Assembly: GCF_006345805.1 (NCBI RefSeq)
Contig: NC_043026.1
Location: forward strand, 4,526,001 to 4,590,000
Length of the DNA: 64,000 nt
Direction: 5' to 3'
DNA from: Octopus sinensis
Taxonomy: Eukaryota
The number at the start of each line of letters is the position of its first letter. Position 1 is the stretch's first letter. A model generated the notes under the pieces. That model was not told where the DNA came from and did no database searches. It saw only the letters and a program-made list of their open reading frames with translations. Positions 37,306 to 62,600 of the stretch are shown here, piece after piece. Both the position numbers and the translations under genes were made by a program.

Positions 37306-40300
37306 TCTATATATATAAAGCTGTAGTTGTGTGAGTGTCTGTCCCCATCGATTAGATTCCTAACTACTCCCACATTTTGCGGTGCAGTTTAACCAAAACC
37401 GGGTATCTTATAGTCGTGATTCAAACAATTTGCACAACCGAATGTTTTAGTTGTTGCACAAATCTTTATATATAAAAGTAAGGTTGTGTGTCTGTCTCCT
37501 ACGATTTAGATTCCTAACTACTCCCACATTTTGCGGTGCAGTTTAACCAAAACCGGGTATCTTATAGTCGTGTGATTCAAACAATTTGCACAACCGAATG
37601 TTTTAGTTGTTGCACAAATCTTTATATATAAAAGTAAGGTTGTGTGTCTGGCTCCTACGATTTAGATTCCTAACTACTCCCACATTTTGCGGTGCAGTTT
37701 AACCAAAACCGGGTATCTTATAGTCGTGATTCAAACAATTTGCACAACCGAATGTTTTAGTTGTTGCACAAATCTTTATATAAAAAAGTAAGGTTGTGTG
37801 TCTGGCTCCTACGATTTAGATTCCTAACTACTCCCACATGCGGTTGCGGTGCAGTTTAACCAAAACCGGGTATCTTGTAGTCGTGATTCAAACATTTGCA
37901 CAACCGAATGTTTTAGTTGTTGCACAAATCTTTATATATAAAAGTAAGGTTGTGTGTCTGGCTCCTATGATTTAGATTCCTAACTACTCCCACATTTTGC
38001 GGTGCAGTTTAACCAAAACCGGGTATCTTATAGTCGTGATTCAAACAATTTGCACAACCGAATGTTTTAGTTGTTGCACAAATCTTTATATATAAAAGTA
38101 AGGTTGTGTGTCTGTCTCCTACGATTTAGATTGCTAACTACTCCCACTTTTGCGGTGCAGTTTAACCAAAACCGGGTATCTTATAGTCGTGATTCAAACA
38201 ATTTGCACAACCGAATGTTTTAGTTGTTGCACAAATCTTTATATAAAAGTAAGGTTGTGTGTCTGGCTCCTACGATTTAGATTCCTAACTACTCCCACAT
38301 TTTGTGGTGCAGTTTAACCAAAACCGGGTATCTTATAGTCGTGATTCAAACAATTTGCACAACCGAATGTTTTAGTTGTTGCACAAATCTTTATATATAA
38401 AGTAAGGTTGTGTGTCTGTCTCCTACGATTTAGATTCCTAACTACTCCCACAATTTTGCGGTGCAGTTTAACCAAACCGGGTATCTTATAGTCGTGATTC
38501 AAACAATTTGCACAACCGAATGTTTTAGTTGTTGCACAAATCTTTATATATAAAAGTAAGGTTGTGTGTCTGTCTCCTACGATTTAGATTCCTAACTACT
38601 CCCACATTTTGCGGTGCAGTTTAACCAAACCGGGTATCTTATAGTCGTGATTCAAACAATTTGCACAACCGAATGTTTTAGTTGTTGCACAAATCTTTAT
38701 ATATAAAAGTAAGGTTGTGTGTCTGGCTCCTACGATTTAGATTCCTAACTACTCCACATTTTGCGGTGCAGTTTAACCAAAACCGGGTATCTTATAGTCG
38801 TGATTCAAAACAATTTGCACAACCGAAGTTTTAGTTGTTGCACAAATCTTTATATATAAAAGTAAGGTTGTGTGTCTGGCTCCTACGATTTAGATTCCTA
38901 ACTACTCCACATTTTGTGGTGCAGTTTAACCAAAACCGGGTATCTTATAGTCGTGATTCAAAACAATTTGCACAACCGAATGTTTTAGTGTTGCACAAAT
39001 CTTTATATATAAAGTAAGGTTGTGTGTCTGTCTCCTACGATTTAGATTCCTAACTACTCCCACATTTTGCGGTGCAGTTTAACCAAAACCGGGTATCTTA
39101 TAGTCGTGATTCAAACAATTTGCACAACCGAATGTTTTAGTTGTTGCACAAATCTTTATATATAAAGTAAGGTTGTGTGTCTGTCTCCTACGATTTAGAT
39201 TCCTAACTACTCCCACATTTTGCGGTGCAGTTTAACCAAAACCGGGTATCTTATAGTCGTGATTCAAACAATTTGCACAACCGAATGTTTTAGTTGTTGC
39301 ACAAATCTTTATATAAAAGTAAGGTTGTGTGTCTGGCTCCTACGATTTAGATTCCTAACTACTCCCACATTTTGTGGTGCAGTTTAACCAAAACCGGGTA
39401 TCTTATAGTCGTGATTCAAACAATTTGCACAACCGAATGTTTTAGTTGTTGCACAAATCTTTATATATAAAAGTAAGGTTGTGTGTCTGTCTCCTACGAT
39501 TTAGATTCCTAACTACTCCCACATTTTGCGGTGCAGTTTAACCAAAACGGGTATCTTATAGTCGTGATTCAAACAATTTGCACAACCGAATGTTTTAGTT
39601 GTTGCACAAATCTTTATATATAAAGTAAGGTTGTGTGTCTGGCTCCTACGATTTAGATTCCTAACTACTCCCACATTTTGTGGTGCAGTTTAACCAAACC
39701 GGGTATTATAGTCGTGATTCAAACAATTTGCACAACCGAATGTTTTAGTTGTTGCACAAATCTTTATATATAAAAGTAAGGTTGTGTGTCTGTCTCCTAC
39801 GATTTAGATTCCTAACTACTCCCACATTTTGCGGTGCAGTTTAACCAAAACCGGGTATCTTATAGTCGTGATTCAAACAATTTGCACAACCGAATGTTTT
39901 AGTTGTTGCACAAATCTTTATATATAAAAGTAAGGTTGTGTGTCTGGCTCCTACGATTTAGATTCCTAACTACTCCCACATTTTGCGGTGCAGTTTAACC
40001 AAAACTGGGTATCTTATAGTCGTGATTCAAACAATTTGCACAACCGAATGTTTTAGTTGTTGCACAAATCTTTATATATAAAAGTAAGGTTGTGTGTCTG
40101 TCTCCTACGATTTAGATTCCTAACTACTCCCACATTTTGCGGTGCAGTTTAACCAAAACCGGGTATCTAAAGTCGTGATTCAAACAATTTGCACAACCGA
40201 ATGTTTTAGTTGTTGCACAAATCTTATATATAAAAGTAAGGTTGTGTGTCTGGCTCCTACGATTTAGATTCCTAACTACTCCCACATTTTGCGGTGCAGT

Positions 40301-40950
40301 TTAACCAAAACCGGGTATCTTATAGTCGTGATTCAAACAATTTGCACAACCGAATGTTTTAGTTGTTGCACAAATCTTTATATATAAAAGTAAGGTTGTG
40401 TGTCTGTCTCCTACGATTTAGATTCCTAACTACTCCCACATTTTGCGGTGCAGTTTAACCAAAACCGGGTATCTTATAGTCGTGATTCAAACAATTTGCA
40501 CAACCGAATGTTTTAGTTGTTGCACAAATCTTTATATATAAAAGTAAGGTTGTGTGTCTGGCTCCTACGATTTAGATTCCTAACTACTCCCACATTTTGC
40601 GGTGCAGTTTAACCAAAACCGGGTATCTTATAGTCGTGATTCAAACAATTTGCACAACGAATGTTTTAGTTGTTGCACAAATCTTTATATATAAAAGTAA
40701 GGTTGTGTGTCTGTCTCCTACGATTTAGATTCCTAACTACTCCCACATTTTGCGGTGCAGTTTAACCAAACCGGGTATCTTATAGTCGTGATTCAAAACA
40801 ATTTGCACAACCGAATGTTTTAGTTGTTGCACAAATCTTTATATATAAAAGTAAGGTGTGTGTGTCTGGCTCCTACGATTTAGATTCCTAACTACTCCCA
40901 CATTTTGCGGTGCAGTTTAACCAAAACCGGGTATCTTATAGTCGTGATTC
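37306..40950. repeat. Tandem satellite, ~154-bp unit, about 24 copies
   Basis: Unit TCTTTATATATAAAAGTAAGGTTGTGTGTCTG(T/G)CTCC..GTCGTGATTC-AAACAATTTGCACAACCGAATG..GCACAAA, with unit starts 154 bp apart (37630, 37784). Confidence 0.97.
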
Positions 40951-41321
40951 ATATCGAGCCCTTCTGGGTATTAGCGCGCGTCTACGATGAGTCTACGATT
41001 TAAAAAAAAAATTACCATCATTTTTTATTCCATTTTAATGCATTTTTCGCTATTATATAAGGGAAGTAACTCTCTAAAAATGTCTACGATGAGTCAACGA
41101 TTAAAAAAAAATTACCATCATTTTTTATTCCATTTTAATGCATTTTTCGCTATTATATAAGGGAAGTAACTCTCTAAAAATGTCTACGATGAGTCAACGA
41201 TTTAAAGAAAAAATTACCATTTTTTATTCCATTTTTAATGCCTTTTTTGCTATAACTCACTAAAAATGCTTATATAGTTATTTCCCTTACAAACCCGAGC
41301 AACGCCGGGCGATACTGCTAG
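37306..41321 (+). mobile_element. Non-autonomous Helitron, copy 2, head-to-tail with copy 1 and expanded by an internal satellite
   Basis: CTAG|TC junction at 37305/37306. Same hairpin and CTAG|T end at 41318-41322. Confidence 0.85.
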
Positions 41322-42469: not shown

Positions 42470-45400
42470 ATGGAAGACCAGACTGAAAATACTTTAAGGA
42501 AACTTATCCCTCAGAAATGGGCTTTGAGTTACTCAACACCAAAAGGGGATGAAGAAGGAGTTGACAATCAAAGGGGTAAATACGAGGAAGATGATGGTTC
42601 AAGGAGGAGTGATGAAGGATATTGTAGTGTTATTTCAGAGAGAGAATCAGCAGTGAAGGCCATATCTGTGGCAAGACTCAACACACATGGAGACAAAGAA
42701 AGCACAAAAGAAACTGAAAAACAAATAGTTGCTAAAATACAGAGGATTCGTCTTCAATATGATCGCTGCATGATGTTTATGGAGCATATAGTTAAGGAGA
42801 GCAAACATTATGAAAGTCTGGGGTTAAGTGCCAATTGTATTTTAGAAAAGGTCAAAGAGAGACTTGGAATTTTGCTGAAATATACTAAAGAACAGAATAT
42901 TTCTATTGAGCAGGACCTCGAATGGTTTCAACAAAGACTCTTTGACATTTATGTCACCAGCAATCCATACAACCACAAGACCATTGAACCAGCAAAAGTA
43001 ACCACAAAATTTCGGCCGCTTCAGCCAGTTGTGACTAGAGAAGCAAATATTGAGGAATCTGGAGAAGAATTTGAAGAAATCCCAATAATATCCAATATTG
43101 TCATCATAGAGGAGGGAGTGATGACATATTCCCACAATTGCAAGATAATAAGTTTAGTAACAAGAGACAGTGACAGAATTGATGTCCATTGTCCATCTTC
43201 TGTGACCAGTTTCACAAGAATCAGTGAAGACATGGTTCTGGCAACCCTCCCCTTCCATGAAATGATTCTTATTATCAGCCCCAAAACCTTAAAGATCAAA
43301 AGGATAAAGTTGGGGTTACATATGGTGAGTTACTTGGAAGATTCTACACTTATAGGTGTAGAAATGTTTGGTAAGACAGTTTACCAATTGATTGGGAGGA
43401 TAATACCATTAACTATCAATTTATTACCAAGAAACCCCTACAGATATTGCTGTAGGGGTCCAGAATATACTTGTAATTACATTCGCCAGCATCAACAGAG
43501 TAATCTGTTACAAACTGGATGGCCAACAGTTATGGGAGGTAGAGACCCATTCTCTGCACCTCCCAAGTAAAATCTCTCTCTACCAAAATTATTTCTATGT
43601 CCTCCAGGGACAAATAATTTATAGGATTTCAGCTAAAGGTGGTGTAACAAGGGGACATTGGCAGGAAATGCCACTCTATTTCTGTTGGTAAAGATACCAT
43701 TTTGGTAACAGATTATTGCGGCAAACCACATGGTATTCAAATGAATAAAGACTTTTGCCCAAACTGTCATACACACCACCAGCTACATACCCCCAGTTTA
43801 AAAGACTATATTGATATTGAGGATTGCTACAACATTACAATATTCTACCTATGTCTACATCTTCTATATTAATAATTTACAAAACAAGAAAGCTAAATTA
43901 TTCACTGATAACGGGGAAATAATTAACCAAAATAATTCAGTTTTCCTTGAGCTTCCTTCTTTCTGTTGTAGAATAAACGCAAACAGATCCTGGTATTTTA
44001 TCCTGAAATGAAAGGTTTCAGTATATCACCTGTCCTGAACTAAGAAAAGGCCCTTTAATAAAGGTGCAAACTGGTTACCTGAAAATATGTCATATTGTAT
44101 CAAATAAGTGTCTAGCTGTGACCACCACTGAAAACAAAAGCGGGTCCATATCCTCTTGATCAACGAAGATAAAGTTGACATTGCAGAAAGAATTTCTCTG
44201 GGACATCATAATGTCAGCATTGCTGCAACTCCAATTAATTTTGTAGTCGTAGATGGAAACGAAAATAAAATGGTATTTTATTCCACATGTGGTGAAGAAC
44301 TTTTTCAAAAATACCTTCCATTCTATGGCCACCCTCATCACATCTACTCTGATAATGTTTATTTCTATGTCCTCTTCAGGAGACACTCTATTCTCAGATG
44401 TTACGATCTATATGGACAAATGAAATGGCAGTGGGAACTGCCTTTCCCTGTTCACCCTCACATTGCTGTTTTCCAAGGAACTCTTTATGTCCCGGACACT
44501 CAACTCAACAGGGTTCTTCTTTACAAGTATCAAGACCGGTCGTCTGGCGGTCTTTTACCCATTAAAAATCCTTACATCAGAAATCTAAATCTACGACTCA
44601 AAGAAAAGGAGAATGACCAAAAACTTGTCATTGGCGAAATATGTAATCTGTCCAATGGACAGTTGGTGGTGTCTGACATCAACCATGATTGCTTGTTGTA
44701 CATTTCTGAGGAAGGAGACATTGTGTCCAGATTATCTCTGCCGTCTACAGCCACAGATATATGTCGATGGGATTCTAATCATATAGGGGTCACATTACCC
44801 CTACAGAAACAATTAAGGGTCATCGGAAACCTATCAAAGACAGTGAGAAGTGTATCATTAAGGCAGCCTTATGTACGGTGTGTAAGATGGGTGAATGTGA
44901 AATTGTTTGTTATTGTGATAAACCATCACATTTAGACATTTTAGCCATCAATAATAGTAATCAAGTTGAAGTAATTAAGACAATTAATATCCCTGTGTTT
45001 GTAAAATCATTATCAATAGACAAAACAGAAAAGCTATTAATTGTTACTAGGGGAAAAGCTTTTCAGTACAACACTAGAATAGGTGGTGGTGGTCATCGTC
45101 GTCATCGTCTTCGTGGTGGTAAAACTAGATATGGTTATGTTAGTAGTATTAAGATGGTCCCCAGTGTTTTAATGTCCCAAGTGAAACGTCCCCTCAGTCT
45201 CCAAGGTGGATCTATTGACCAAACGTCTGTTTATCTGATAGACAGAAGCCGTATGTTTGCCATAAACGATCAGAATTTGTTGGTTAATGATCTCGTTACT
45301 AATAATCAACTTAATTATTATATCGACCTGGTGGATGTATTTTCCAGACACATTTCTCTCAGTGAAATGTTGTCTTCCACTTTATATCTACAGGACCTGA

Positions 45401-47951
45401 CAGTTTCTGATAAAGGCAGACATATTCCTCTCCCTAAACATTTGGGAGACGAAAGACCAGCGGGGATTGATCGTTTGGTTCTTACTGAAAATAATCTGAT
45501 TGCAGGATATGACGAGGAGAATGGAAACATTAAGATATTCACATTGGATGGTCACCTATTGGATTCAATCAAAGTGAATGTTTATAGAGATATTAAAATG
45601 TGTCGATGGCAGTCAAACACACTGGTCATTACGAGTGTGGATCGTTATTATGATAAACACCAACTGTTGACATTAAAAGTGGAATTTCCATTGTCGTTGG
45701 TAATTTACCAAACGAGAAATAAATATTATTGTGTGGCTTCTTTATCAAATAATCAACTGGTTTTGAGTGAAAAGGGAGATGGAAGACATTTGCATTTTGT
45801 TGATATTGATGAAATACATTCGAGTGTGAAGGAAATAAAAAAAATAGACATACCTGAACCATTAATAGAGAGAGAAGAAGATGGACATTATTCTGATGAA
45901 ATCCAGGATATTAAAGTTACTGATGAAGATGTCATCATTGTCTTAAACAAGAGATTCATCATTTTCTTCAACAGTGGTGGTCAATATTTACATTCAGTCA
46001 GACACTACATGGTGGATTATTTTGGTGGTGATGACAGGATGACAATTGATGACAGTTTTTTGTACATTTATGGTCAGTGGGAGAAATGTTTTGGTTTATC
46101 TGGATATCGAAACATTTTGTGTTTGACCCAGAATGGGGAATACAAGAGAATATTTTTAAATGAAAGGATTTATAAAGATAGAGTATATTTCTCCAGTATA
46201 GACTGTAAAGGACCAAGGTTTGTTGGAAGCCCCTGGAGGGGAAGGAATGAATTGTATGTTGAAGGGTTGTTTATGGTGAATCAAGACAGCTTCCCGGTTG
46301 CTCGTTTACAAACAGACGAATGTCCTGTTCAAGTAAAAGACTTTGATGTCTCTGAGGAAGGAAAGACAGTTGTGTGTGAAAAAGCCAATAATGGAAATGT
46401 TAAAATATTCGATGAAGACGGCCAGTTGCTACGTCACAGAAATGTTGCAAGTTTAGTTGGTGGTGTGTGTTTTACACAAGAATCACACATAATGGCCACG
46501 GTTCCTAAAAGGAAAGAAATATTTCAACTGAATGGAGAAGATTTGCAGACATCTCAAGTTTGGTCGAGTCTCATCCCTTATGGTGTAATATGGAGAAAAG
46601 TGGCGGGTATTTACTGGTGTGTACATAATGAATTGATTGAATGTCATTGCATAAAGATGATGGGGACCAAGTGAACATTCTGGAATCTGTGTCGTCATTA
46701 AATCTTGATTCTGGTCTTCGTTTCCCTTCCATTACATCTGAAACGAACAAGGAAATTTCAGTAATGAATTAATTAATAAATTGGAATACAGAGGAGGGGA
46801 TGGAGATGGAGGAGGAAGAAGAGAGGTAAATCAGTGAAATAATTGGTAAAGGTAGATTAAAGGTGAGATGTGGTAATTACATAGCGGAGATTAATAATTC
46901 AGGAATTGATGAAATATCAGTGAGGAGACTTCCATATAGGACAGCAATGGTCCCTTTTTCCATTCCTGCATTCGAGGAAACTGTTGATTATGATTATTGG
47001 GACATTAGGGACGTGAACAGTAAACTAATTAAGTTAGATGAGAATGTGAGTGTGTTGATATTTCGAGAAAGTGTCACATTAATCAGAACAACAACAACAG
47101 TGGACATACTTCAACATGAACAACAACAACGAACACCACTGGACATATGTCGGTGGACAGAGGAATGTTTCATTGTCGCCTTTGGGAGAGAAATGAGGGT
47201 CTTCAACAGGGATCTCCGTCGTTTAAAAACCATCAGAACTGAGAAATACTACAACAGGATTTATAAATACAACGACAATCAACTCGTGTGTGGTGGTCAT
47301 TATATTAGAGACATAACTCAAGAAGAGAGACACGAGAAATACCAAAGAAGATGGGAGAACAACAAGGATTACTATTATTGCAAAGACCCCGACATCTTTG
47401 ACCCTTATTATGTGGATGTGGTTGATATCAAAGATGGGAAATGTAAAGATGAAGTGTGTCGTGGGGAGATGGGGAGATTGGGAAGGTTTGAGGGAGATGA
47501 AGGGGTGGATGATGTGGGAGTCACATCTTTTGGTGATGTTGTTGTTTTGAGGTGGGAGATGAAGGAGGATGAGTCTGGATTTTGGGATGTTTTGTGTTTT
47601 GTGGAATCGTTCAGGGAAAAGTCTTTGGTGAGGAGGATAATAATAGAAGAAGGAAGGTTTTATGTTCCGGAATATTATACTGCAAGACCTCGTCTGACCA
47701 TAATTGGTGAATGTGTTTATATAACAGATTTAAGAAACAATATTTACGAAATACCTCGACATATTGAAGAGGAAACATCTGAAGATGATGAAATCCGGGG
47801 ATTAAAAGATAATCCAAAATATTTACTCCTCAGACGGGATGATAATGAAGTCTCTGAAGTTCTTGGTTTGGATGTTTCAGACAATTCTTTGATGGTTTTT
47901 GGAATTATTCCTGGACGTCAACCTTTTGCTTTCTTTTATTTTGACAAATAA
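42470..47951 (+). CDS. NHL-like tandem beta-propeller protein, gene A right copy (~1,830 codons in one exon, frameshifted as assembled)
   Basis: Splice acceptor TTTCTTTGCAG ends at 42462, 8 nt before the ATG. N-terminal coiled-coil-like segment, then NHL-like blades across frames (TPTDIAVGVQNILVIT..KLDGQQLW; [15 protein letters not shown]; IKIFTLDGHLLDSI). Roughly ten or more single-base shifts; those in the shared region are absent from the left copy. Confidence 0.8.
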
Positions 47952-50900
47952 ATATTTCCAGAAATATTAAACTTCAATCTTCTTCTTCTTATTGTTGTTG
48001 TTGTTGTAAATGGCTTCGCCCAGGAATCGAACCTGCATCGCATACATCGCATTCTACACACTTATTGTTGTAACATTCCTCAACACTCTCTCTTTGTGTG
48101 TGTGTATATATTTATATACAGTATATATACATGTTTATTATATATATATACACACATATTTAGGAATGTATGTATAGAAATAAGGCTATAGATATGTATG
48201 TTTGTGTGTGTGTATATACGCATGTATATATATGTGTATATATATATATAATATATACGCATGCATGTATGTATAGGAATGTCTGGTCCGAAAGCAGAGA
48301 CTTTCATAATCATTGATTCTCCATCAAAAGGCAGACGACCACCGCCGCCGTCTCCGCCGTCGTCGTGGTCGTCGTTTCCGCCGTCGTCGTGGTCCGTGGT
48401 CGTGGTCGTCGTCGTCGTGGTCGTCGTCGTGGTCGTCGTGGTCGTCGTCTCCGCCGTCGTCGTCGCCGCCGCCGTCGTCGTCGTGGTCGTCGTGGTCGTC
48501 GTCGTCTCCGCCGTCGTGGTCGTCGTCATCATCATCATCATCATCATCATCGTCGTCATCATCATCATCATCATCGTCGTCATCATCATCATCATCGTCG
48601 TCTTCATCGTCGTCATCATCATCATCATCGTCATCACCATCATCGTCATCATCGCCATCATCATCGTCATCATCATCATCATCGTCGTCATCATCACCAT
48701 CATCATCGTCATCATCATCATCGTCATCACCATCATCGTCATCATCGCCATCATCATCGTCATCATCATCATCATCGTCATCATCATCGTCATCATCGCC
48801 ATCATCATCGTCATCACCATCATCGTCATCATCGCCATCATCATCGTCATCATCATCATCGTCATCACCATCATCGTCATCATCGCCATCATCATCGTCA
48901 TCATCATCATCATCGTCGTCATCATCACCATCATCATCGTCATCATCATCATCGTCATCACCATCATCGTCATCATCGCCATCATCATCGTCATCATCAT
49001 CATCATCGTCGTCATCATCATCGTCATCATCATCATCGTCATCACCATCATCGTCATCATCGCCATCATCATCGTCATCATCATTATCATCATCGTCATC
49101 ATCATCATCATCATCGTCATCACCATCATCGTCATCATCGCCATCATCATCATCATCATCATTATCATCGTCATCATCATCATCATCATCGTCATCACCA
49201 TCATAGTCATCGTCGTCATCATCATCATCGTCGTCATCATCATCATCATCATCGTCATCATCATCATCGTCGTCTTCATCGTCGTCATCATCATCATCGT
49301 CATCACCATCATCGTCATCATCGCCATCATCATCGTCATCATCATCATCGTCGTCATCATCATCGTCATCATCGCCATCATCATCATCACCATCATCGTC
49401 ATCATCGCCATCATCATCGTCATCATCATCATCGTCGTCATCATCACCATCATCATCGTCATCATCATCATCATCGCCATCATCATCGTCATCATCATCA
49501 TCATCGTCATCGTCATCATCATCATCATCGTCATCATCATCATCGTCGTCTTCATCGTCGTCATCATCATCATCGTCATCACCATCATCGTCATCATCAT
49601 CATCATCGTCGTCATCATCACCATCATCATCGTCATCATCATCATCGTCATCATCATCATCGTCATCGCCATCATCATCGTCATCATCACCATCATCATC
49701 ATCATCATCATCATCATCGTCGTCATCATCATCATCGTCGTCATCATCATCATCATCATCGCCATCATCATCGTCATCATCATCATCATCGTCGTCATCA
49801 TCGTTGTGTGTGCGTGTGTGCAGTCTGCATCTGACAGTTTTTAACGTTTAATAAGAATAGATTGTTGTTGTTGTTGCAGTGACATTCCAACTGCACACAC
49901 GCACAAACATTGCCTTTCGTCCTCGTAGGGTTGTTGTTGTTGTTGATGTTGTTGGGGGTTCATAAAAAAAGAGAAGGACACTTTAAGAAGCATTCAGTAA
50001 AAGCTTTCCCATAGCTGGTCATTTTTCACGCTAGAAATAGAAACCACTTTATTTTTCATATAAAATTTGAAGGACAGATAAGAAGCATTCATAAATAAAA
50101 TTGACCTGTATATGGTCTCATTTCATGCTAGAAAGAGCCATCTAAACCTTCACATTTTTGTCTCATCACAAATAAAAATCCAAGGACAATTTCCAAAGCA
50201 TCCATGTCAAATATTGTCCTATAGATGGCCTAACATCATGCTAGAAATAACAGCCAAATACTCTGAAATTTGTATCGTTTTTCATAAAAAAAGTGAAGGA
50301 CACTTTAAGAAGCAACTCCGAAAATATTGTCCTGCGGCGGTTTAAGTGTAAAATATTATAAAAGTATGCATCTATGAGTTTTATGTGTTTAAAAAACATA
50401 GCAAAGACCTGTGTGTATATGTAGGTATATACATGTGTATAAAGGTATTTTTGTATAAAAATGGGTATTTTTGAATGAAATTTGGTAGAAATAACTTTCA
50501 AACGATGCAGATTACGATTAAAAAGAAATTTGTTGGCAAAATGTTTTGTAAGGGTTCGAGGGAAAAAGTGTGTGATTTAAGGGAGATTTGGCTGTTGTTT
50601 CTAGCACACCACCCTCCTTGTCTTCTTTTTTTTCTCATTTTTTCCCTCAGAAACACATTTATGTTACAAAAAAATAAAAAGAATATTTTTAAAATCTCTG
50701 ATTATTTTTAGCCCCACTTTCTGGCCCCCGATTCTTTCTCTTTATATAATTGTAAAATATTGGAGAGCCTGAGAAGATTCTTGCTGGGATTTATCCACAG
50801 GGATTTAAATAAGAGCTTTGTAAAAGAGGATTTCTTTTGAGAGCATCCTTTTCTGTTAGGAAATGAAAGTGGAAGTTTCATTAAAAATATCCATTTTCCT

Positions 50901-50957
50901 GGAAGTTATGAGGAAACAAGTCGATGGGGTGTTCATCTGTAGTTATGCCACAGGATG
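46047..50957. repeat. Right inner arm of inverted duplication
   Basis: Reverse complement of 26135-30448. Confidence 0.97.
48335..49803. repeat. Compound trinucleotide minisatellite (GTC/GCC grading into ATC/GTC/ACC) with ~50-60-bp higher-order units
   Basis: Recurrent ATCGTCATCACCATCATCGTCATCATCGCCATCATCATCGTC block. Confidence 0.95.
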
Positions 50958-50958
50958 T

Positions 50959-51014
<56 letters not shown>

Positions 51015-52023
51015 ATAACTGTAGAAATGTAGGTGTGTATATATATATATTATATGTATGTGTGTTTGTGTATACATTTATTCATGTATATGTACAAGTT
51101 TAAAAAAGAAATATCAAAAGATGTTGGAATATTTCAGGTATTGGATAATTTCCGACTCAGGATTGCCAATACATTTATATAGGAATATAAATATACATCA
51201 TTATTATACGTAGCCTTCTTGCACACACATAAGCATACCTCGTAGAAAAGACGACGGGTAAATCCATCTGTGACAACCCATGCTTAAGGGTGTCTGGTGA
51301 TATTTCTGGTCTGGTATCACACAAACCGCCCAGTCTGGAGTCTCTCTATAACTTCTGCCGCTTCCCGTTCAATTGTTTCTATATGTTGCCTAGCAACGCT
51401 AATTTGAATGACAAAAAACGTGGAGAAAAAGGCGGGAAATTTAGACAAAACTTTGTCTAAATAATTATTTAAAATCAAAGAGACATTGTCAGCATTTTTA
51501 TGAATTAAATAATGTTAAATGACATTAAGGTCTCACAATTAAGTCATTAATTAGGAATTATAATTAATTTGGACGCGAAAAAGAAAGGAAAACTAACGGA
51601 TGTGTGTATATGTATGTATTTATGTATGTACATAAGCAGGTAAATATTTATATATGTAAGTGTGTATGAATATTTACATACGTCTATAGAGAGAGAAAGG
51701 GGGAGAGAGAGGGGGGAGTATTACACATGTATACACATAAGACGAATGATGTCTGGGGTGTGTGTCGGTGTGTCTGTGTGTGTGTATACACGCCTGTTTA
51801 TGTTTGTGCGTGTGTGTGTATTTATGTGTGATGTTGTGTGTGTGTGTGTGTGTGTATCCGGGAACGTCACTTTCTGCCTCTCTCTCTCTATCTATGTATG
51901 TATGTATCTATCTATCTATCTATCTACATATATATATATATATATATATATATCTGTCTGTTTGACTCTCTCCCCTATCTATCTAGCCATCTCTCTCTCT
52001 ATATGTCTATCTTTTTATGTATA

Positions 52024-52079
<56 letters not shown>

Positions 52080-52083
52080 ATAT

Positions 52084-52387
52084 AATTGATCAAAATAAAA
52101 ATAAAAATAAAACATGAGGCGAAGGATTCAGCGGTACATATGTTTCGGGCCTTTATTAGACAGATTCATAACAATCATAATGTATGTCTGTGGCTTCTTC
52201 AGCCCGCAACAACAGCTTCACAGGACTTGTTACTTGTAACACATGTCTTGTGGAAGCTGTTGTGCGCGGCTGAAGAAGCCACAGACATACATTATGATTT
52301 GTTATGATCTGTCTAATAAAGGCCCGAACATATGTACCGCTGAATCCTTCGCCTCAGTTTTTATTTTTATTTTTATTTTGATCAATT
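52084..52387. repeat. Fold-back (near-perfect palindromic) element, ~300 bp
   Basis: GAGGCGAAGGATTCAGCGGTACATATG pairs with CATATGTACCGCTGAATCCTTCGCCTC; arms ~145 bp. Confidence 0.92.
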
Positions 52388-52479
52388 TACTCCCACCACC
52401 TACACCACCAACGGTATACACAGGTGCTTATAATTATCAAGTACTCACCCCGACTACACTCAACTCACCTATATATATA

Positions 52480-52645
52480 AATATATACGACGGGCTTCTT
52501 TCAGTTTCCATCAAACAAATCCACTCACAGGGCTTTGGTCGGCCGAGGCAATAGAAGACACTTGCCCAAGATGCCACACAGTGGGACTGTACCCGGAACC
52601 ATGTGGTTGGTAAACAAGCTACTTACCACACAGCCACTCCTGCGC

Positions 52646-52650
<5 letters not shown>
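52480..52650 (-). mobile_element. SINE 5' portion
   Basis: Same family as 10585-10975. Confidence 0.8.
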
Positions 52651-52710
<60 letters not shown>

Positions 52711-52825
52711 TATATGTATATATATATATATAATATTAATTAAGGATAGAAATTGATATTTATCAATTAAGACCAGTGGTCTAGCATATTAAAAAAGAAT
52801 CCGAAGATTAAAATATTTATATATA

Positions 52826-53026
52826 CCAATTGAGGACTGAACACGAAAAGTGGACAGTGAACATGCTAGATATAGACGTCAAATCGCCATTCTCCACAAA
52901 AGATTATGTTCTCAGATCAAACTTGGTGAGTTTGATCTGAGAACATAATCTTTTGTGGAGGATGGCGATTTGACGTCTATATCTAGCATGTTGACTGTCC
53001 ACTTTTCGTGTTCAGTCCTCAATTGG
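52826..53026. repeat. Fold-back element, ~200 bp, flanked by (TA)n
   Basis: CCAATTGAGGACTGAACACGAAAAGTGGACAG pairs with CTGTCCACTTTTCGTGTTCAGTCCTCAATTGG; loop under 10 nt. Confidence 0.92.
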
Positions 53027-53559
53027 TATATATATATATATATATATATTATGTCTGTATTTATAACTCTCTCACACTTTGTCTTTATCTACAACAACCT
53101 CCACTCTGTACCAGTGTCTGGGTTTGGTTGTTTATGGAAGTGGTATGTTTAACAAGGAGTGTTTCAGCCTCCCATTCTACTACTGAGTCCTCAAACACAC
53201 ACCCACACACACACCACACATACACACATGCAAACAATCCAACACGTACACACCCACGTCGTTCAGTGATGGAAAGGGACGTCCGTCCTATTTGTGCAGA
53301 TGTGTAGGTGAGAGGCAATCCTTTTACTCAATATAGAAAGAGAAATAAGGAAATAGATTTCCTTCTCTACTCTCCTCTGCCTTGTCATGGATTTGAACGC
53401 GAATCCACAGGAAACCAACTCGCAGAAGTTATAACACGCGTTTTATACATACATTCACCAATATAAACACATGCAGCCACAAGTACACAGTCATATACAC
53501 AAACATGTGTGTACGTCTCTCTCTGCTTGTGGCCATATTACGTGTATATCTATGAGATA

Positions 53560-53808
53560 TTGAGTCGGTGTATAATTATTGCGGCTATTTTTCAACAAAT
53601 TTTATTCAACAAAACAATAACAATATTTAACAAAAACATCTTTGAATGACGGTCTGACCGTCTGCCAAGCAAATAGGAAGCAGTAATTGAAGGAGATGGT
53701 GAATATGCTCCGGAATAATCATTTAAAGATGTTTTTATTGCATGTTGTTATTGTTTTTGTTGAATGAAATTTGTTGAAAAAAGCCGCAATAATTATGCAC
53801 CAAGCCAA
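53560..53808. mobile_element. Mariner-derived MITE (mirror of 19308-19555)
   Basis: Same TIRs and TA flanks. Confidence 0.8.
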
Positions 53809-56800
53809 TATGTATATAACAAGGTAGAATGAACAGAACATTTTCGGCCTCTATTCTAGGACTCAACCAAGTAGAAACACACACTGATCGATCGATAGGT
53901 AGACAGATAGAGAGAAAGAGAGGGAGAGATGGATAGACAGACAGAAGACAGATACGTAGATAGACGCAGGAGTGGCTGTGTGGTACGTAGCGTGCTTACG
54001 AACCACATGCTTCCGGGTTCAGTCCTGCTGCGTGGCACATCTGTAGCCTTGGGCCAACCAAAGCCTTGTGAGTGGATTTGGTAGACGGAAACAGAAAGAA
54101 GCCCGTCGTATATATATATATGTATACATAGACAAACACACGTGTAAGCATACGCACGCACGCACACACACACGTAAGTTTATGCAAGTATTTATATACT
54201 TGCATACACCTGTATAATTATGGCTCTGGTAACATCCTCACAATGAGATTCATAGAAATGTTGTCGCTAAATCCTGTGCATCACAGGCTGCAACAGTTAC
54301 CATTCTCTCACTCCACATCGACAGACATGTCTCACCTGCACACTTCATCCTATCAACAACTTCCAACAGAAAATGCCTTCCTTTTATGCGTTGCATCTCT
54401 CCTGAATTCTTACATGTGCAACCAGTAAACATTTTAAAAAGTTTAGTCAGCATTTAAACCTAGTCTTGTCGACTGCAGTTTTTGTGCCTCTAGCAACAAA
54501 CAGCTCTCCTAAGAGATTTCCTATTCCACTTACGAGAGGCGATTCAAGTCTTTCAGAACCAGCTCCCCTGCAATTCTTGACTTCGTCCCTTGAGGCAGAG
54601 GTTAGGACTCACCTAAAAGACACAAGTGAACGTCTGGAAACAGCAGTCTATATCTGACCAACTCAGACTGGTTTGCCAGCTCCAAAAGGCAACGAAAAAT
54701 GCTCATTTTCTAACAATTCACCCAACAGTGAATCAATATTCTTTATTTAATATCGTCACCTATTTCTTAACGTCTCCATTTTCCTGGTGTATATATTTTA
54801 TCGCCTGCCGTCTTCTTTCTATCGTTTAAACACAGCAGACACGGCAGAATCGTATCGAAAACTGTTCAGAAGTATTTCAGGAGGAAAAAAGAAAGCAAAG
54901 CCACCTCAGTGATCAAAAGCAAAATCTATTCAAACAAACCTAAAACATACAAGTCACCATACGACATTATGTGATGTAATATAGTTTTGTGTATAGAAAG
55001 TATTAGATTTGATGTGGACCTTGTTGTTAATGACAACCAGTGTGTTATGTATTCTTTTGGTTCGTGGTGAGATAATAAACAACTCACTGAAGGCATTTTT
55101 ATGATTCTACCCGTTTCTTTACTTGGCATGTTCACAAACTGTAAATGACACAGGTCATACTGCTTACTAGATGCGCTTAACAAAATAGTACTAATAGTGG
55201 GGATGTATTCATATATACTTATATCTACGCATACACATAGATATGAACGTGTAACATTAATAAACACCCACTTTACAATTATCTAAAGTGTGTATACATT
55301 CGTGTGGGGGACACCCTGTATATATACATGTACAACAGGCTACTTTCAGTTTCTAAGAAGTTATAATAGAAAATACTTGTTTGTGGTGTCAAGCAGTGAA
55401 ACGCCTGCACCCGTGTGTGTGTGTGTTAAATAGTGTCCTTCCTTTTATAAAAAACATTGACGGATTTCGGAAATACGTGACTGCTATTTCTAAACATTTG
55501 TTTGTCCACATACAAACTTTCTTAGGTAGTTCCGTATAACTTTATCAGATGAGGGGGAAATACTCTGGTTTTCCACTTGATTTCTATCCCTTGACTAATT
55601 CCAAGTTGACCGTTTTTTTTTTGTCTTTCTTGAAATATTTTCCATTCGTACATTTGACAGTCTACATCATCATCATCACACCACCATCATCATCATCATC
55701 ACCACCACCACCATCATCATCACACCACACACCCATCATCGTACTTTGGTTCATTCTTTCTTTCGTTGCAAAACTCGTGGCTTATTTTTATTCCAGTTTT
55801 TTGTTTTTTTATCATTATTCTCTAAGTCAAGGAGGTGAGCTGGCAGAATCATTAGCATTCTGGACAAAATGCTTAGCGATATTTCGCTCATCGCTACGTT
55901 CTGAGTTCAAATTTCACTGAGGTCGACGTTACCTTTCATTATTTTGGGGTTGATAAATTAAGTACCAGTTGAGTACTGGGGTCAATGTAATCGGCTATGC
56001 CCCTCCCACAAATCTCAGGCTTTGTGCCTATAATAGACAGGATCATTATTCACTAAGTCCTACAGGAAACACAGTTTTATCATCATTAAAATAGAAAGAA
56101 GTTTGAAAGAATGCATTTACAATGCTAAGTACAGAAGAATTTATTGTAAAAAATCTTTAGCCAACATCTTAAGGTATTTAAAAATGGGAAAATAAACTAA
56201 AAAGTAACCTAAAGTAATCTCCGTTTAGGTCGTGGATCCCATGCCAGAGTAACACCAGGCAGGGTTTAAAGGCAGTTTGATATCACTGAACGATATCACA
56301 CAGCAGTGTAAAAAGAACAGATGCAAAAATAGATACATCAAACCAAATGCTAAAGCATGAAGTCTGTAACATCCTTCGGTTCCTGCAACTGACTCTTCAA
56401 TAAACATTCGCTTCTGTTGACCTCTCATTTGAACCCAGGTGCGTAGGACTAGCCTACCTCAGCCGACACAAGAACACAAACATTCTCTATACTATAACAA
56501 TAATGTATGGCCCGGGTAACTATGTACCTCCTCTACTGAAACACACCTGTTTCTGTCTCAGTGTAAGCTTTCATCATCTGACACAGATCATCTCCTCCAA
56601 TGTCCCCTCCCTTCTCAAAGGACCTTTGTCTCCAAGTCACTTGGTGGCCCTGCTAGCACTGGTGCCATGTGAAAAGCATTCAGTCCACACTGTGTAGTGG
56701 TTGGCATTTGGAAAGGCATCAAACTGTGAGAACCTTGCCAAAACTGACCCCTCGCCTGTGCTTGTGCCATGTAAAAAAAGGTCCACTCTGCTGGGTGATT

Positions 56801-57549
56801 GGTTTTAGGAAGGGCATCCAGCCATAAAAACCCTGATAAAACAGATAGAGAAGTCTGGTGCCAGCTGCTGCCTGGCCAACTCCTGTCAAACCGTCCAACC
56901 CAACATCCAGCATGTTCAATGATTATGATAATGATGATGATGGTTTCCCTTAAACTTGAAATGAAGTGTGACCTGAAGTGCAACCTTAAAACAAATTGTG
57001 ATTGGTACACCATTTCACGTCTTGAAGGCTATGTTATTTTGGGGGATTTTATTTTTTATATTTGTGACCCAAGAGCAGGAGAAAGCTATGGAGTATTTAA
57101 TGAACAGATGAGACAGTGAAACCCTTAAATTGCCAACCAAGATACACAACAGTAAATGTTGACCGTGCAATAACACATGTGATCATCAGCTGCCTGAATG
57201 TCATCGAGGGGCTTCCTCCCCCCTACTGTCACATGATGTTTTGGCTACAGCAAGATACAATACCAACCTCAGCAAAGACTGCCGCAGGATAAATATATTC
57301 AACACCTCTGCTAAGAAATACACACACCGACACACATACATATATTTACATAGACAGACAGACAGATAACTAGAGATACACGTACATATAGATATATATA
57401 TATATACATCTGTAATACAATCAGTGAGAAGGAGAACATTTATGGGTAACTGCTTTGAAACCTAAAGCTCCTCTACGTTGATTATAAATCCATATTAATT
57501 CCAATTATTACTGACATTTTCAGGCATGCTTCAGTGTGCCCCATTCCAA

Positions 57550-58230
57550 ATAAAGGCAGCTCGTTTAACCCAATCAAGTATCACGCTATGGCTCTCACCT
57601 CAAACATCTCCTAGGTAATGAAAACAATGACCTTCTCCAAAACGTTGAATCCCTCTCTCAGCCCAGTGACCATTAGCACATCTTGTGCTGAGCCCGATCC
57701 GTTGGGGACCGATGGTTTCTTGTCATTCACCAGCCGGATGACATTTCTGAGATGTTCAGTAAAAGCCACTTTGTTACCCCAAGACAACAAGAAAACTTTT
57801 GTCCCTGTCTGGGATGTGAATCTCCTACAAAAAAAGAAAAGAAAATTCCCACGTATGGTTTCTACCCATTTCGCACCTCTTCAGTCAGTAGCTTCCAATC
57901 AGATCACACCATTGCAACTTATGTTGATGGAGCTCATTCCATCTCATTCAAAATTAACTCTCGTGTACTTCCAGGGGTTTGGTTCTGTCACATCTTCTCT
58001 TCCTTCCATAAGCCAATCACCTGCTTATTGCTAAATCCAACAATGACCATCCTCATGGAGTCAATATGAACCTTCATTCCTCACCAATCAGCCTCAACCA
58101 TTTACCCTGGACCACGTCCAAATAAGGGCTGTTCAACTGATTGGCATTAAACCCCTAAAGAACAGACTCTTTACTCTCCGGCATGTTTCCATCATGCCTG
58201 TGAAGGTCGCTGTTCATGTCCCTCTCCCAT
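57550..58230 (+). mobile_element. Degraded LINE RT fragment (mirror of 14860-15545)
   Basis: ORF 57618-58034 matches ORF 15081-15542. Confidence 0.6.
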
Positions 58231-58641
58231 TCAGCAACCACAGATCCGCTCCTCTCTCTCACCTCTCTTCAATCCAAACTTCAGTCCTGGTCTGACCAAT
58301 CCACGCCGTCCTTCTTTCCTCCCTGAAACATCGACCCACCGTAATTGTCTTCTCCCTGCTCATATCTTTCTTGCAGGGGTTAGACCAGAACATTAATGAC
58401 ATGGTGTTGGAGGGTCTACAGAGGCTATGGGCTCTGCCCCGCCTTCCAGACTAAGCAAATAAAAACACATACATACATGCATAATGTATACACACATATA
58501 CTTGTATATACATACAGCATCTTTCCATAAATACACACTTTCAGCATCCATTAATACAAATACACATCTACATATCCATACACGTAAAAACGTATATAGA
58601 GTTTAATACACACACACGCACACATTAACACACACACATCT

Positions 58642-58659
58642 TCTATATTTATAAAATTG

Positions 58660-58690
<31 letters not shown>

Positions 58691-60835
58691 CTGTGTCTGT
58701 AGCCATTTATGTTTTTTATAGAAATCCACATTCAATGTCCGATTGACCTCAAATTTTATACACATGCTCCACAAGGTCAGAGCTAGGTCATGGCGAGGAA
58801 ATCACCCCCGTAACCTGCATGCATGATCGGGGGGCATACACATAAAGTGACCTTATGCGCACATGTGTTGCTGAACTTTTGTTCACGCCTGAATTGCTCC
58901 ATTTTACACGTTAATGTGTTATTTTGGGGGGAGAGAGCAAAAAGGATCATGCACCAACACGTATTGCACCTCTAGCTACCCTTTTGACACATTTCTTGGC
59001 CCAATAAATGAAGCACTTACCCTTTCTTTGCCAGGGTTCAATGTAATGCTACCTTAAAAAAGCCAGTTGCCGAACGTTTAGTCATTCCATTGCTACACTT
59101 TTTACTTTGAAGAAAGACAGCAAAAGAACCCATGTTCCATACTCTTTGCAAGTTCCAATGTGTAACATTGAGCAATAGGCGTTCTTAGTCGAGGGCCATA
59201 GCGGTGGTTCATTGTAAAAAATCACGTCAAAGCTTTTGAAGCCCTATTACTGCTTGCAATAGCTTCTCCGTTAACCATACCCATGCCTTACTTGCTGTGT
59301 ATGGTGTTACTTAGGGAGTAGAGACAACAAGGTGTGCATCATCACTTTTTTGCACCCCTACTCACCCTATTGACACTCTTAATTAAGCGAAAGTCATCCT
59401 TTGCCGGGGCTCAGTGCACTACTACGTTACAAACTTCCGCTGCCAAACATTTATTCAAACATACTAACGCTAAACTACGCCATTTGGAGCACTAACTTTT
59501 TAGTTTTTGCCAAGTCCAATGTTTAAAATTGTGCACCCAAATCCATTCTTAGACATTGTTCATTCCTAGACGGGGATCACTGCGTTTCCATGACGGAAAG
59601 CAGAGGACGGTGGATTCACCGCACATGTTGGTCCGTATGAAGTAGACAACAGATGGATAGTGCCTTACTGCCCAATCCTGTCGAAGGCATTCGATGCTCA
59701 CATAAATGTCGAGCTCTGCCATTCTGTAAAGTCAATCAAATATGTGTGCAAGTACATCAACAAAAGCGCTGATGCTGCTGTGTATGGCCTGCAACCAGAT
59801 GGAGTCCGAGATGAAATAACGCAATACCAAGTAGGCAGGTACATAAGTAGTAACGAAGCCTTTTGGCACATTTTCGGGTTTCCACTGCATCAAAGACATC
59901 CGCCAATCCAGCAGCTTGCAGTGCACCTTGAAATCGGAGAGCGTGTATACTTCACCGCTTCCACTGCTGCTCGACTGATTGAGCAACCAAAAGATACAAC
60001 ACTCACGGCTTTCTTCAAACTCTGCCAGGTAAGACCTGTTTGCACAAGATCTGCTTTATCCTCAAGTCCCGTCATACTACACATGGAATAAGTGGCAGCG
60101 AAGGAAGTCAGGCCGAACCGTTGATGGTCACCCTGAGATTAAATTTGATAATTGCCTCGGCAGAGAGTACACGGTTCACCCGGGCCAACAAGAATGCTTC
60201 TACCTCCGATTGCTGCTTCACGAGGTAAAGGGTCCAAAGTCCTTCGACCAATTAAAGACCGTGAACGGCCATACATGTGCTACATTCAGAGAGGCTTGCT
60301 TACTACATGGGCTGCTAGAAGACGGTGTGCAGTGGGATGCTACGCTTGCGGAGGCTGCTGTTTCACAGTCACCGAAGCGTCTCAGAGCTCTGTTTTCTGT
60401 ACTCCTGCACATTTGCCAACTTCCCAATCCCCATTCATTGTGGTTAAAGAACAGACACGACCGACCAGAAGACTTCCATTACCAGGCCCAACTGCATCAT
60501 ACCTGCTTGCCAGCTGAAAATGATTTCATTTACAACTGTGCTTTACTTGACATAGAGAACAAGACTGTTTCTCTGGGAGGTCATACCTTACCTCCATATG
60601 GGCTGCCGCAACCAGTGTGCCACAGGACGCCTTCAGTACAAACAGAGTTGATACGTGAAACGTCCTATGATACTGAAGCCCTTAATCAATACATCCAGCA
60701 AAAGGAGCCCAAACTTCTGCCTGAGCAACAGAGGGCTTACAGTACCATCTTTGACCATATGCAGAAACAAAAAGCGGGTATTTTTTTCTTGATGCACCTG
60801 GAGGGACCAGAAAAAAAACGTTTGTTATTCAGCTT
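58642..60835 (+). mobile_element. Helitron derivative with RepHel fragments (mirror of 12250-14451)
   Basis: ORFs 59660-60091 and 60210-60839. Confidence 0.9.
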
Positions 60836-61364
60836 CTGATATAATGGAAATCCACACCATCTGAAATGTATTTGTTGAAAATTTCATTAAAAAATATCAA
60901 TTTTTTCTGGAAGTTAGGAGGGAGGCACCTGTGTTAGTATACTTAATTAACTATAAACACACTGTCTGGTAACATATAAAATATAAACTGAAGCTAAAAC
61001 TTATTAAAATATTCTTATTGTTTTTATTTCAACTTACCAGAGAATGGCTCCTGGCTCGTTTGACCAGTAAAGGTGAAGGAGTAAAAAAACGAAGACATTT
61101 CGACTTGTCCGGGCTATTACAGACAAATTAACAACAATTTGACTCGAGAGATAAACACAAACCACTGCAAAACACCCACCAAATTAGCCGGAAACACACA
61201 CACGTCCATTTCATGTATCTTCTTTCAATTTCTGCTCTCTGCAAATAAAAGTATTATGGATACAACTACTTACAATAATAGGGTTTAACGTATAATTTCT
61301 TTCTATGTTCATAATTAAATCAATATTTTAATGATTAGACAGACGTCCAATAGAATAGCTCTCC

Positions 61365-61710
61365 GTCCCACAGGGTGGCATCTTGGGCAAGTGTCTTCTG
61401 CTATAGCCTCAGGCTGACCAATGCCTTGCGAGTGGATTTGGTAGACGGAAACTGAAAGAAGCTTGTCGTATACATGTATATATATATATATATGTATGCG
61501 TGTGTGTGTTTGTGTGTCTGTGTTTGTCCCCCTAGCATTGCCTGACAACAGATGCTGGTGTGTTTACGTCCCAGTCACTTAGCGGTTCGGCAAAAAGAGA
61601 CTGATAGAATAAGTACTGGTCTTACAAAGAATAAGTCCCGGGGTTGATTTGCTCGACTATAGGCAGTGCTCCAGCATGGCCACAGTCAAATGACTGAAAC
61701 AAGTAAAAGA
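61365..61710 (+). mobile_element. SINE lacking its head (mirror of 10585-10930)
   Basis: Starts at GTCCCACAGGGTGGCATCTTGGGCAAGTG; about 0.8 kb present in the left arm is absent here. Confidence 0.8.
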
Positions 61711-61799
61711 GTAAACAGTATGCCCTGTGTAGGGCTTGTGGAAAGGGCTGTCTTCTTGGCACTGAAACTCCAAATGAGGCTCTGTCTCCAAAGGTTTAA

Positions 61800-62600
<801 letters not shown>

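Follow-up and report, generated by a model that had tools for sequence, protein, structure and literature searches.

The window analysed in this work (64,000 nt of the Octopus sinensis genome, contig NC_043026.1, positions 4,526,001 to 4,590,000) is part of scaffold C30 (15.1 Mb) and carries two copies, designated A and B, of a gene whose C-terminal region is predicted to fold into beta-propellers. A first-pass annotation of the window, made from the sequence alone, had pointed out that the two copies differ in patches consisting almost entirely of amino acid replacements, and had proposed diversifying selection on a binding surface. The features relevant to this comparison are listed below, with X and Y denoting the two C-terminal propellers.

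42470-47951, plus strand: copy A, a full-length family member that starts with MEDQTENT... and has its stop codon at 47949-47951, as delimited from pieces of open reading frame (ORF) and from alignment to the intact ORF of paralog L035.
46047-47951, plus strand: the portion of copy A to which the first-pass annotation refers, corresponding to the C-terminal 633 codons (end of propeller X, a conserved linker and propeller Y).
28534-30448, minus strand: copy B, open over 633 codons, with its 5' end cut by a scaffold gap.
46060-46290, plus strand: hypervariable patch 1, which spans columns 4-66 in the alignment of the family and comprises a hairpin and loops from blades 5-6 of propeller X.
46980-47015, plus strand: hypervariable patch 2, the entry loop of propeller Y, which reads TVDYDYWDIRDV in A and PVDYDLMDIRDR in B.
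47427-47697, plus strand: hypervariable patches 3-4, located in blades 4-5 of propeller Y (D-A and B-C loops).
47733-47925, plus strand: scattered variable loops in blades 5-6 of propeller Y, with the A/B replacements R/N, R/L, RR/SE, P/L and P/S.

A codon-wise comparison of A (46047-47951) with B (28534-30448, reverse-complemented) revealed 57-59 nucleotide differences, the count varying with indel placement, along with two in-frame indels of 3 nt. The number of replaced codons was 43-44, and four codons differed only silently (GAC/GAT twice, GGG/GGA and CAA/CAG); the strong imbalance described previously was thus recovered, while the totals given for it, about 40 replacements and about 3 silent changes, had to be corrected. 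In the patch reported at 47532-47697 as consisting of replacements only, realignment located 14 substitutions in 13 codons at 47547-47682, every one of them replacing. Patch 1, in which no silent change had been seen, contained 11 replaced codons and a 3-nt indel within 46069-46282 and no silent difference, and the third patch of the first-pass annotation was also found in the alignment, as patch 2 of the list above. The clustering of the differences was confirmed by a dispersion index of 2.27 in 60-nt bins, against 0.95 expected (p=2e-4), by the presence of 16 pairs of differences no more than 2 nt apart, against 3.6 expected, and by a longest identical run of 285 nt (p=0.004). Application of the Nei-Gojobori method (NG86) to this pair resulted in 6.5 synonymous (Sd) and 50.5 nonsynonymous (Nd) differences, with values per site of 0.017 (dS) and 0.034 (dN) and a dN/dS ratio (omega) of 2.0. 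For the pair alone, the significance of the replacement excess was p 0.04 in a binomial test and p 0.09 in Fisher's test.

A six-frame search of the O. sinensis genome identified 343 candidates, and all 70 of those that were scored matched, so the family has at least 70 copies. The view of the locus as "two gene A copies" was therefore too narrow, and A is not even the nearest relative of B by coding sequence. Among the 70 scored copies, 38 are located on C30, between 2.3 and 15.1 Mb, one on C1 and 31 on small unplaced scaffolds; C30 thus accounts for 38 of the 39 copies with a chromosome-scale placement. An uninterrupted ORF of 1,750-1,939 amino acids (aa) was present in all 20 full-length loci that were fetched. 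The genes are intronless, encode proteins of ~1,800-1,900 aa and are annotated as "uncharacterized". Protein searches gave 49 matches, all of them "uncharacterized" or "hypothetical" proteins from Octopus vulgaris, O. bimaculoides and O. sinensis, and a profile search against 1.84 billion cluster representatives gave 27 matching proteins, ten of which were looked up and corresponded to nine proteins from Octopus or Argonauta hians and one metagenomic fragment. The family was thus found only in octopods. No description of it was found in the literature searched, and its LOC identifiers occur in no searchable paper, in agreement with the first-pass annotation, whose author knew of no such cephalopod locus.

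The downstream flanks of the family are co-duplicated over at least 1.5 kb, which argues for segmental duplication rather than transposition. Downstream of every copy examined (L002-L050), short TTC/TTG repeats and a transfer RNA-like short interspersed element (SINE) fragment (GGCTTCGCCCGGGAATCGAACC...) start within ~50 nt of the stop codon, and, ~400 nt downstream, each of these copies has a long (GAT)n/(GAC)n microsatellite that varies in length, indicating that the duplicated unit is much larger than the ORF. Two pairs of copies share an identical 1.9-kb C-terminal coding sequence: L029 and L030, placed 460 kb apart on C30 (G000:C30:4987712-4989613 and 5448724-5450625), and L003 and L004, on the unplaced scaffolds C9762 and C11383. 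Such identity points either to duplication in the very recent past or to duplicates created by the assembly.

Selection was analysed over the C-terminal 633 codons in 39 distinct copies, and in 20 full-length copies, leaving out the more diverged O. sinensis paralogs as outgroup. In 741 pairwise NG86 comparisons the median values were 0.037 for dS, 0.056 for dN and 1.44 for omega, and omega exceeded 1 in 90% of the pairs. The one-ratio model (IQ-TREE GY+F3X4, 39 copies) gave an omega of 1.84 with kappa 2.41, and fixing omega at 1 lowered the log-likelihood (lnL) from -13695.56 to -13741.27, a doubled difference (2dlnL) of 91.4. Site models were fitted with our own codon-likelihood code on a fixed tree. 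The model with a positively selected class (M2a, lnL -11896.0) was favoured over the nearly neutral one (M1a, lnL -12791.4) with 2dlnL=1791 in the 39 copies, and assigned 53% of the sites to omega 0.11, 34% to omega 1 and 13% to omega 12.4. A posterior above 0.95 was obtained for 73 selected sites, and for 40 of them the nearest alignment gap was more than 3 columns away. In the 20 full-length copies, 7.8% of the sites had an omega of 7.9, and 84 of the 95 selected sites were located in residues 1001-1300 and 1501-1850, whereas the N-terminal ~1,000 aa and the strand frameworks were conserved (omega ~0.1). The shared downstream flank showed a median substitution-only divergence of 0.052, near the mean dN and above dS, indicating that the selected codons evolve far above the neutral yardstick. 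Changes counted on the tree amounted to 6.83 (N) and 1.91 (S) per site in the selected codons, and to 0.35 (N) and 0.57 (S) per site in the other codons.

The positions at which A and B differ coincide with the family-wide hypervariable positions of the 39-copy alignment, 28 of the 43 replaced codons being family-selected sites (hypergeometric p=1e-18). In patch 2, columns 319, 320 and 325 are selected sites, and the region 47427-47697 contains the densest cluster of selected sites, along with variation in loop length. The diversifying selection proposed for the propeller surface was strongly supported at the level of the family, where the addition of sequences kept dN/dS above 1 (omega 1.84; M2a over M1a by 2dlnL=1791) and the signal falls in loops of one face, as described below, while for the pair alone it was marginal (p 0.04-0.09).

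Structural models were obtained with AlphaFold2 for both parts of the protein. The model of the C-terminal 933 aa (35-row alignment) is all-beta, with a mean predicted local distance difference test score (pLDDT) of 62.6 and confident blocks at residues 90-370 and 590-933. The model of the N-terminal 917 aa (mean pLDDT 64.6) shows helices at 54-163 and propeller blocks at 209-430, 448-690 and 724-872. The predicted order is thus a disordered N-terminus, a helical, coiled-coil-like region of ~110 aa and then tandem beta-propellers, with ~200 aa of helical and disordered sequence preceding the propellers in the model. Foldseek matched both models with probability 1.0 to multi-propeller proteins, the best matches being tandem WD40 propellers such as DDB1, IFT-A and UTP21, at TM-scores of 0.15-0.25, low values that indicate only a generic propeller resemblance and no NHL- or WD40-specific assignment. 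The family had been described as carrying an NHL propeller, an assignment that was not confirmed beyond a generic six-bladed, NHL-like blade pattern: none of eight members scanned with Pfam (P0001, P0002, P0003, P0005, P0018, P0025, P0031 and P0042) reached the threshold of any family, and NHL (PF01436) had no match at E<=1 in these proteins (E<=10 for P0003). The only sub-threshold Pfam matches were to SGL (PF08450, E=0.039) and DUF4934, both of which we take to belong to the six-bladed propeller clan. RING, B-box, WD40 (PF00400), NACHT and NB-ARC had no Pfam match in the members scanned, no immune signalling domain was detected in these scans, and a sequence search of the PDB gave no match. 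Hydropathy analysis revealed neither a transmembrane segment nor a signal-like N-terminus, and the proteins are accordingly predicted to be soluble.

The location of the selected sites was determined from loop topology, not from distances in three dimensions, with strands A to D numbered within each blade on DSSP strings. The model of propeller X (residues 105-369) contains 22 strands of 3 residues or more, equivalent to five complete four-stranded blades and the first two strands of a sixth, and propeller Y shows six blades once one 16-residue strand is split, at moderate model confidence (block means 53-92). In propeller X, 14 selected sites fall in B-C loops and 12 in D-A loops, against none in A-B and one in C-D loops; in propeller Y, the B-C and D-A loops contain 15 and 10, and the other two loop types 4 and 1. 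Taking both propellers together, selection affects 51 of the 150 residues that make up the B-C and D-A loops, as compared with 6 of the 107 residues of the other two loop types (p=1.6e-8). In a canonical propeller the B-C loops lie on one face together with the D-A loops, so that the selected sites would be placed on one face of each of the two C-terminal propellers. Mapping of the variable sites on a predicted structure, the check suggested in the first-pass annotation, thus located them in alternate loops of a shared face in two six-bladed propellers. The hypervariable loops also vary in length, as complementarity-determining loops do.

Two further observations concern the protein architecture. 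The full-length copies L031-L050 present two unrelated N-terminal types over the first ~200 codons, MEKINEENK... and MEDQTENT..., both of which join the same conserved body at ~residue 180; this suggests that family members have exchanged an N-terminal module or 5' exon. In the same copies, the conserved N-terminal half is separated from the hypervariable C-terminal propellers by a low-complexity linker (GGGHHRPLRGGGHHR..., SISSRDGSISS... repeats), which lies around residue 905-1100 of the full-length alignment and differs greatly in length.

The pattern of variation was compared with that of other octopod sequences. In four close paralogs of O. vulgaris, a separate species with a separate assembly, 79% of the selected positions vary, as compared with 8% of the others. 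Two Argonauta hians paralogs (P0056 and P0077) are 74% identical at the selected positions and 96% identical elsewhere, so loop diversification may predate, or recur outside, the genus Octopus. Single-copy relatives of the expanded family (LOC115216371 in O. sinensis, LOC106880634 in O. bimaculoides and CAI9728090 in O. vulgaris) are homologous to it over the whole C-terminal region (E=2e-190), resemble it in length (1,674-1,680 aa) and share its fold. They differ from it in being present in one copy, on large chromosomes, and in being conserved: the proteins are at least 90% identical across the three Octopus species, and the positions homologous to the selected sites are 83-92% identical between O. 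vulgaris and O. bimaculoides. These data indicate that the loops are not intrinsically unconstrained, and that hypervariability is a property of the expanded subfamily.

With regard to the origin of the A/B differences, both states were present in other paralogs at 52 of the 59 differing nucleotides, with four states private to A and three to B, which indicates that these differences correspond to variation shared across the repertoire. Of the differences in the noncoding flanks, 11 of 16 were likewise shared with other paralogs. A and B are sisters by their flanks and not by their coding sequence, in which B groups with L005 in a star-like tree with weak support, and the nearest paralog shifts from window to window along the coding sequence. 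A search for gene-conversion donors found no sampled copy close to A or B in the variable windows, the best match to A in the hypervariable windows still showing 8-10 differences per 195 nt. The A/B pattern is thus a sample of a standing repertoire, rather than substitutions arisen in place after the two copies split. Short-tract conversion, recurrent selected change and assembly mosaics are all candidates for the sorting of these variants.

Altogether, A and B are members of a large, octopod-only family, and we consider it likely that their patchy differences sample a family-wide diversifying selection on one propeller face, from which we infer a recognition repertoire. Two operational marks of a recognition-receptor family were found: a large clustered family with intact ORFs and, as judged from loop topology in the predicted structures, omega >1 on what would be a contiguous binding surface. 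In the expanded subfamily, ~8-13% of the codons evolve at omega ~8-12, and nearly all of these belong to B-C or D-A loops in the two C-terminal propellers. According to the proposed mechanism, variant states would have spread by duplication plus either inter-paralog exchange or recurrent selected change. The family would thereby constitute a germline repertoire of intracellular recognition proteins, with two variable propeller faces that would bind diverse or fast-evolving ligands and a conserved N-terminal part that would provide oligomerisation or signalling. Candidate ligand classes are a pathogen, a virus, a transposon, a self/non-self marker or a gamete protein, and an immune or antiviral role would be plausible. 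A more specific proposal, that octopods carry tens to hundreds of intracellular multi-propeller receptors, with loops similar to complementarity-determining regions on two faces, as a diversified innate system of immune or non-self recognition, possibly antiviral or anti-transposon, is put forward only tentatively and may well not apply.

It has to be noted that several points weigh against this interpretation. The replacement excess in the A/B pair taken alone is only marginally beyond chance. The synonymous rate is ~3.4x higher in the selected codons, an increase for which the retention of old variants or local mutation could account just as selection could. The likelihoods come from our own implementation on a fixed, poorly supported tree. 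Furthermore, the pairwise homoplasy index (PHI) test was significant, and in four-gamete tests 45% of the site pairs were incompatible, without decay over distance and even outside the selected codons; such extreme homoplasy, due to recombination or to assembly mosaics among 95%-identical paralogs, violates the single-tree assumption and inflates the likelihood-ratio tests. The assignment of the selected sites to one face depends on AlphaFold secondary structure of moderate confidence (mean pLDDT 63-65), and the blade register of propeller Y was picked after seeing the data. Finally, the receptor role itself is a putative one.

Two candidate identities of the family were rejected. A transposon-encoded ORF did not fit, in view of the lack of transposase, reverse-transcriptase or integrase domains in Pfam scans and of the concentration of 38 of the 39 placed copies on one scaffold; a framework omega of ~0.1 combined with a loop omega of ~12 is also unlike transposon decay. 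The other was an ampliconic family of the sex chromosome: the Z chromosome of O. sinensis is LG20 according to a preprint (bioRxiv 10.1101/2024.12.09.627507), and C30, judging from scaffold order and size, does not appear to be LG20.

The same evolutionary mechanism might serve a different biology, either reproductive recognition or an intragenomic conflict such as drive, a toxin-antidote system or an arms race over transposon control. Several traits would suit such a role: the family is arranged as an ampliconic cluster on one small chromosome, where palindromic duplications occur and where C2H2 zinc-finger genes and transposon fragments lie among the copies; its members are intronless and closely resemble one another; and the Pfam scans detected no immune signalling domain. 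It is nevertheless unlikely in our judgement, since the scaffold is apparently not the Z chromosome and the proteins have no signal peptide for an extracellular gamete role.

The state of the assembly at the locus has to be considered before turning to artefactual explanations. The window contains a large inverted duplication with A and B in its two arms, and the following additional features.

8409-30448, no strand assigned: left arm of the large inverted duplication, partner of 46047-64000, with 97.2-97.4% identity over long noncoding stretches.
46047-64000, no strand assigned: right arm of the inverted duplication, partner of 8409-30448.
30449-30548, no strand assigned: 100 consecutive N marking a contig join, at the very point where the A/B homology ends.
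46658-46834, plus strand: four 1-bp deletions in A (46658, 46757, 46822 and 46834), in a stretch otherwise identical to B and to most paralogs.
7342-9921, minus strand: third, degraded family copy, 76-89% identical to A/B, with broken frames, beside C2H2 zinc-finger sequence.
62478-64000, plus strand: mirror of the degraded third copy in the other arm.
27292-28133, no strand assigned: (GAT)n/(GAC)n microsatellite ~400 nt 3' of the B stop codon, with its A counterpart at 48358-49804, in a flank conserved family-wide.

Nothing resembling the upstream part of copy B was found beyond the 100-N gap; this result, together with the position of the gap at the end of the homology, indicates that B is a gene cut by the contig join. 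Comparison of A with the intact L035 ORF revealed 220 substitutions over 5472 nt, none of them nonsense, and 15 frameshifting indels of 1-2 bp (14 deletions and one insertion). These frameshifts lie at 43388-44879 and 46658-46834, clustered where the paralogs are most conserved. The four deletions at 46658-46834 are probably uncorrected long-read errors, and we interpret the 15 indels as a whole as such errors, left where short reads lack unique placement, rather than as pseudogene decay. The frameshifts of A and the truncation of B at the N gap thus look like assembly defects, and unpolished long-read error of the kind present in A implies that intact family genes may be annotated as pseudogenes or omitted. 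The assembly is defective at both copies, and the individual A/B haplotypes may be mosaics.

Other elements were observed in the same window. C2H2 zinc-finger arrays with an 84-bp period (9803-10746 and 61657-62596) abut the degraded third copy in each arm, and in one O. vulgaris gene model (P0007) a family member is fused with zinc fingers. Between the two arms, the spacer contains a tandem satellite (37352-40951; 153-bp period, 23.5 copies, 97% identity). Mirror-image ORFs in both arms (12256-12993 and 60033-60839) are similar to Helitron/PIF1-type helicases, as judged by eye from their translations. The left arm alone carries, at 20830-24703, hAT-like and reverse-transcriptase ORFs in an insert of ~4 kb resembling a long interspersed element (LINE), which makes a structural difference between the arms.

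These defects raise the explanation that the pattern is an assembly artefact, with A and B representing the same locus, or two haplotypes of it, assembled twice in inverted orientation, and with mosaics generated by short-read polishing among 95%-identical paralogs. Apart from the contig join at the end of B and the unpolished aspect of A, whose 15 indels of 1-2 bp without nonsense in 5.5 kb are typical of raw long reads, an artefact would agree with the 31 of 70 copies on small unplaced scaffolds, with the 100% identity of some placed copies, with the site incompatibility that does not decay over distance and with the 11 of 16 flank differences found also in other paralogs. However, more than 8 kb of unique sequence shows 2.8% divergence between the arms, and the ~4 kb insert bearing reverse transcriptase is present only in the left one. 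Moreover, read mixing shuffles variants but cannot create a family-wide replacement excess limited to alternate propeller loops, and hypervariability recurs at the same positions in Argonauta and in O. vulgaris, the genome of which was assembled separately. An artefact is therefore quite improbable as the source of the pattern.

Mutation or conversion without selection was also considered, in which short-tract gene conversion or a multi-nucleotide hotspot would make the patches and the high dN/dS would be a by-product. The 16 near-adjacent differences of the pair, the 52 of 59 states common to other copies, the significant PHI test, the higher synonymous rate of the selected codons (~3.4x) and the sister relationship of A and B in flanks but not in coding sequence are all compatible with such a process. 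On the other hand, it would hit silent and replacement sites alike, and so cannot give a 19-fold increase of N per site with a 3.4-fold increase of S, nor can it yield an omega above 1 in 90% of the pairwise comparisons, which are independent of any tree; in addition, no sampled donor matches A in the hypervariable windows (8-10 differences per 195 nt at best). Inter-paralog exchange probably helps to spread variants, yet is insufficient alone, and as a complete explanation this one is very improbable.

Relaxed constraint, by which A and B would be decaying pseudogenes with unconstrained loops and replacements at the neutral rate, is the least credible explanation and can practically be dismissed, for although A is frameshifted and B truncated as assembled, the pair dN (0.034) is near the flank divergence (0.028) and the pair by itself rejects omega=1 only weakly, there is no nonsense change among the 220 substitutions of A, dozens of paralogs retain intact 5.5-kb ORFs at 5-15% divergence, 53% of the codons are at omega ~0.1 and 13% at ~12, far above 1, and the same loops are conserved in the single-copy orthologues across species.

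Diversifying selection on a recognition surface thus remains the preferred interpretation. Cephalopods are long-lived, complex animals without adaptive immunity. We know of no hypervariable receptor repertoire described for them, and none was found in the literature searched. The family studied here bears the evolutionary signature of a receptor repertoire, being very large and clustered on one small chromosome and combining conserved frameworks with two diversifying faces; to our knowledge, its scaffold of a helical region followed by tandem six-bladed propellers is present in no known immune receptor family. It supplies an inventory of genes, a set of candidate residues for binding and, as a control, conserved single-copy relatives for the study of how octopuses recognise pathogens, mobile elements and non-self. 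The case also indicates that standard assemblies and annotations can hide such families, as "uncharacterized protein" entries, frameshifted copies or sequences on unplaced scaffolds.

Several known systems share part of these traits. Positive selection in surface loops of the recognition domain, within tandemly expanded and fast-evolving clusters, is known for the B30.2/SPRY loops of TRIM5alpha and fish finTRIM proteins, for lamprey VLR and for the leucine-rich repeats (LRRs) of plant NLR proteins. The octopus family resembles them in the placement of selection in surface loops within expanded clusters, and differs in the fold, a propeller instead of SPRY or LRR, and in having no known effector domain. 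The TRIM-NHL proteins (Brat, LIN-41/TRIM71 and TRIM2/3), whose RNA ligands bind the top face of the propeller, also present a coiled-coil region followed by six-bladed propellers with four-stranded blades of ~45 aa, and the octopus blade motif is NHL-like (e.g. NGNIKIFTLDG). On the contrary, no Pfam match to NHL, RING or B-box was found in the eight octopus proteins, although their N-terminal helices could be a coiled coil, and TRIM-NHL proteins have one propeller and are encoded by few conserved genes, whereas the octopus proteins have about five propellers and belong to a hugely expanded, hypervariable family.

In its logic, a hypervariable binding face on a conserved framework, the closest analogue is the HNWD family of Podospora anserina (HET-E, HET-D and HET-R), fungal NOD-like receptors with WD40 propellers and a NACHT domain (PMC2873952). 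The host is a fungus and not an animal, and the octopus members combine helices and about five propellers, with neither a NACHT or other nucleotide-binding domain nor a WD40 signature in Pfam. The generation of diversity also differs, through shuffling of near-identical WD repeats in HNWD genes and in loops of non-repetitive six-bladed propellers in the octopus. Nevertheless, both are intracellular multigene families with a propeller as recognition domain, in which a few positions on one face diversify and paralogs exchange sequence.

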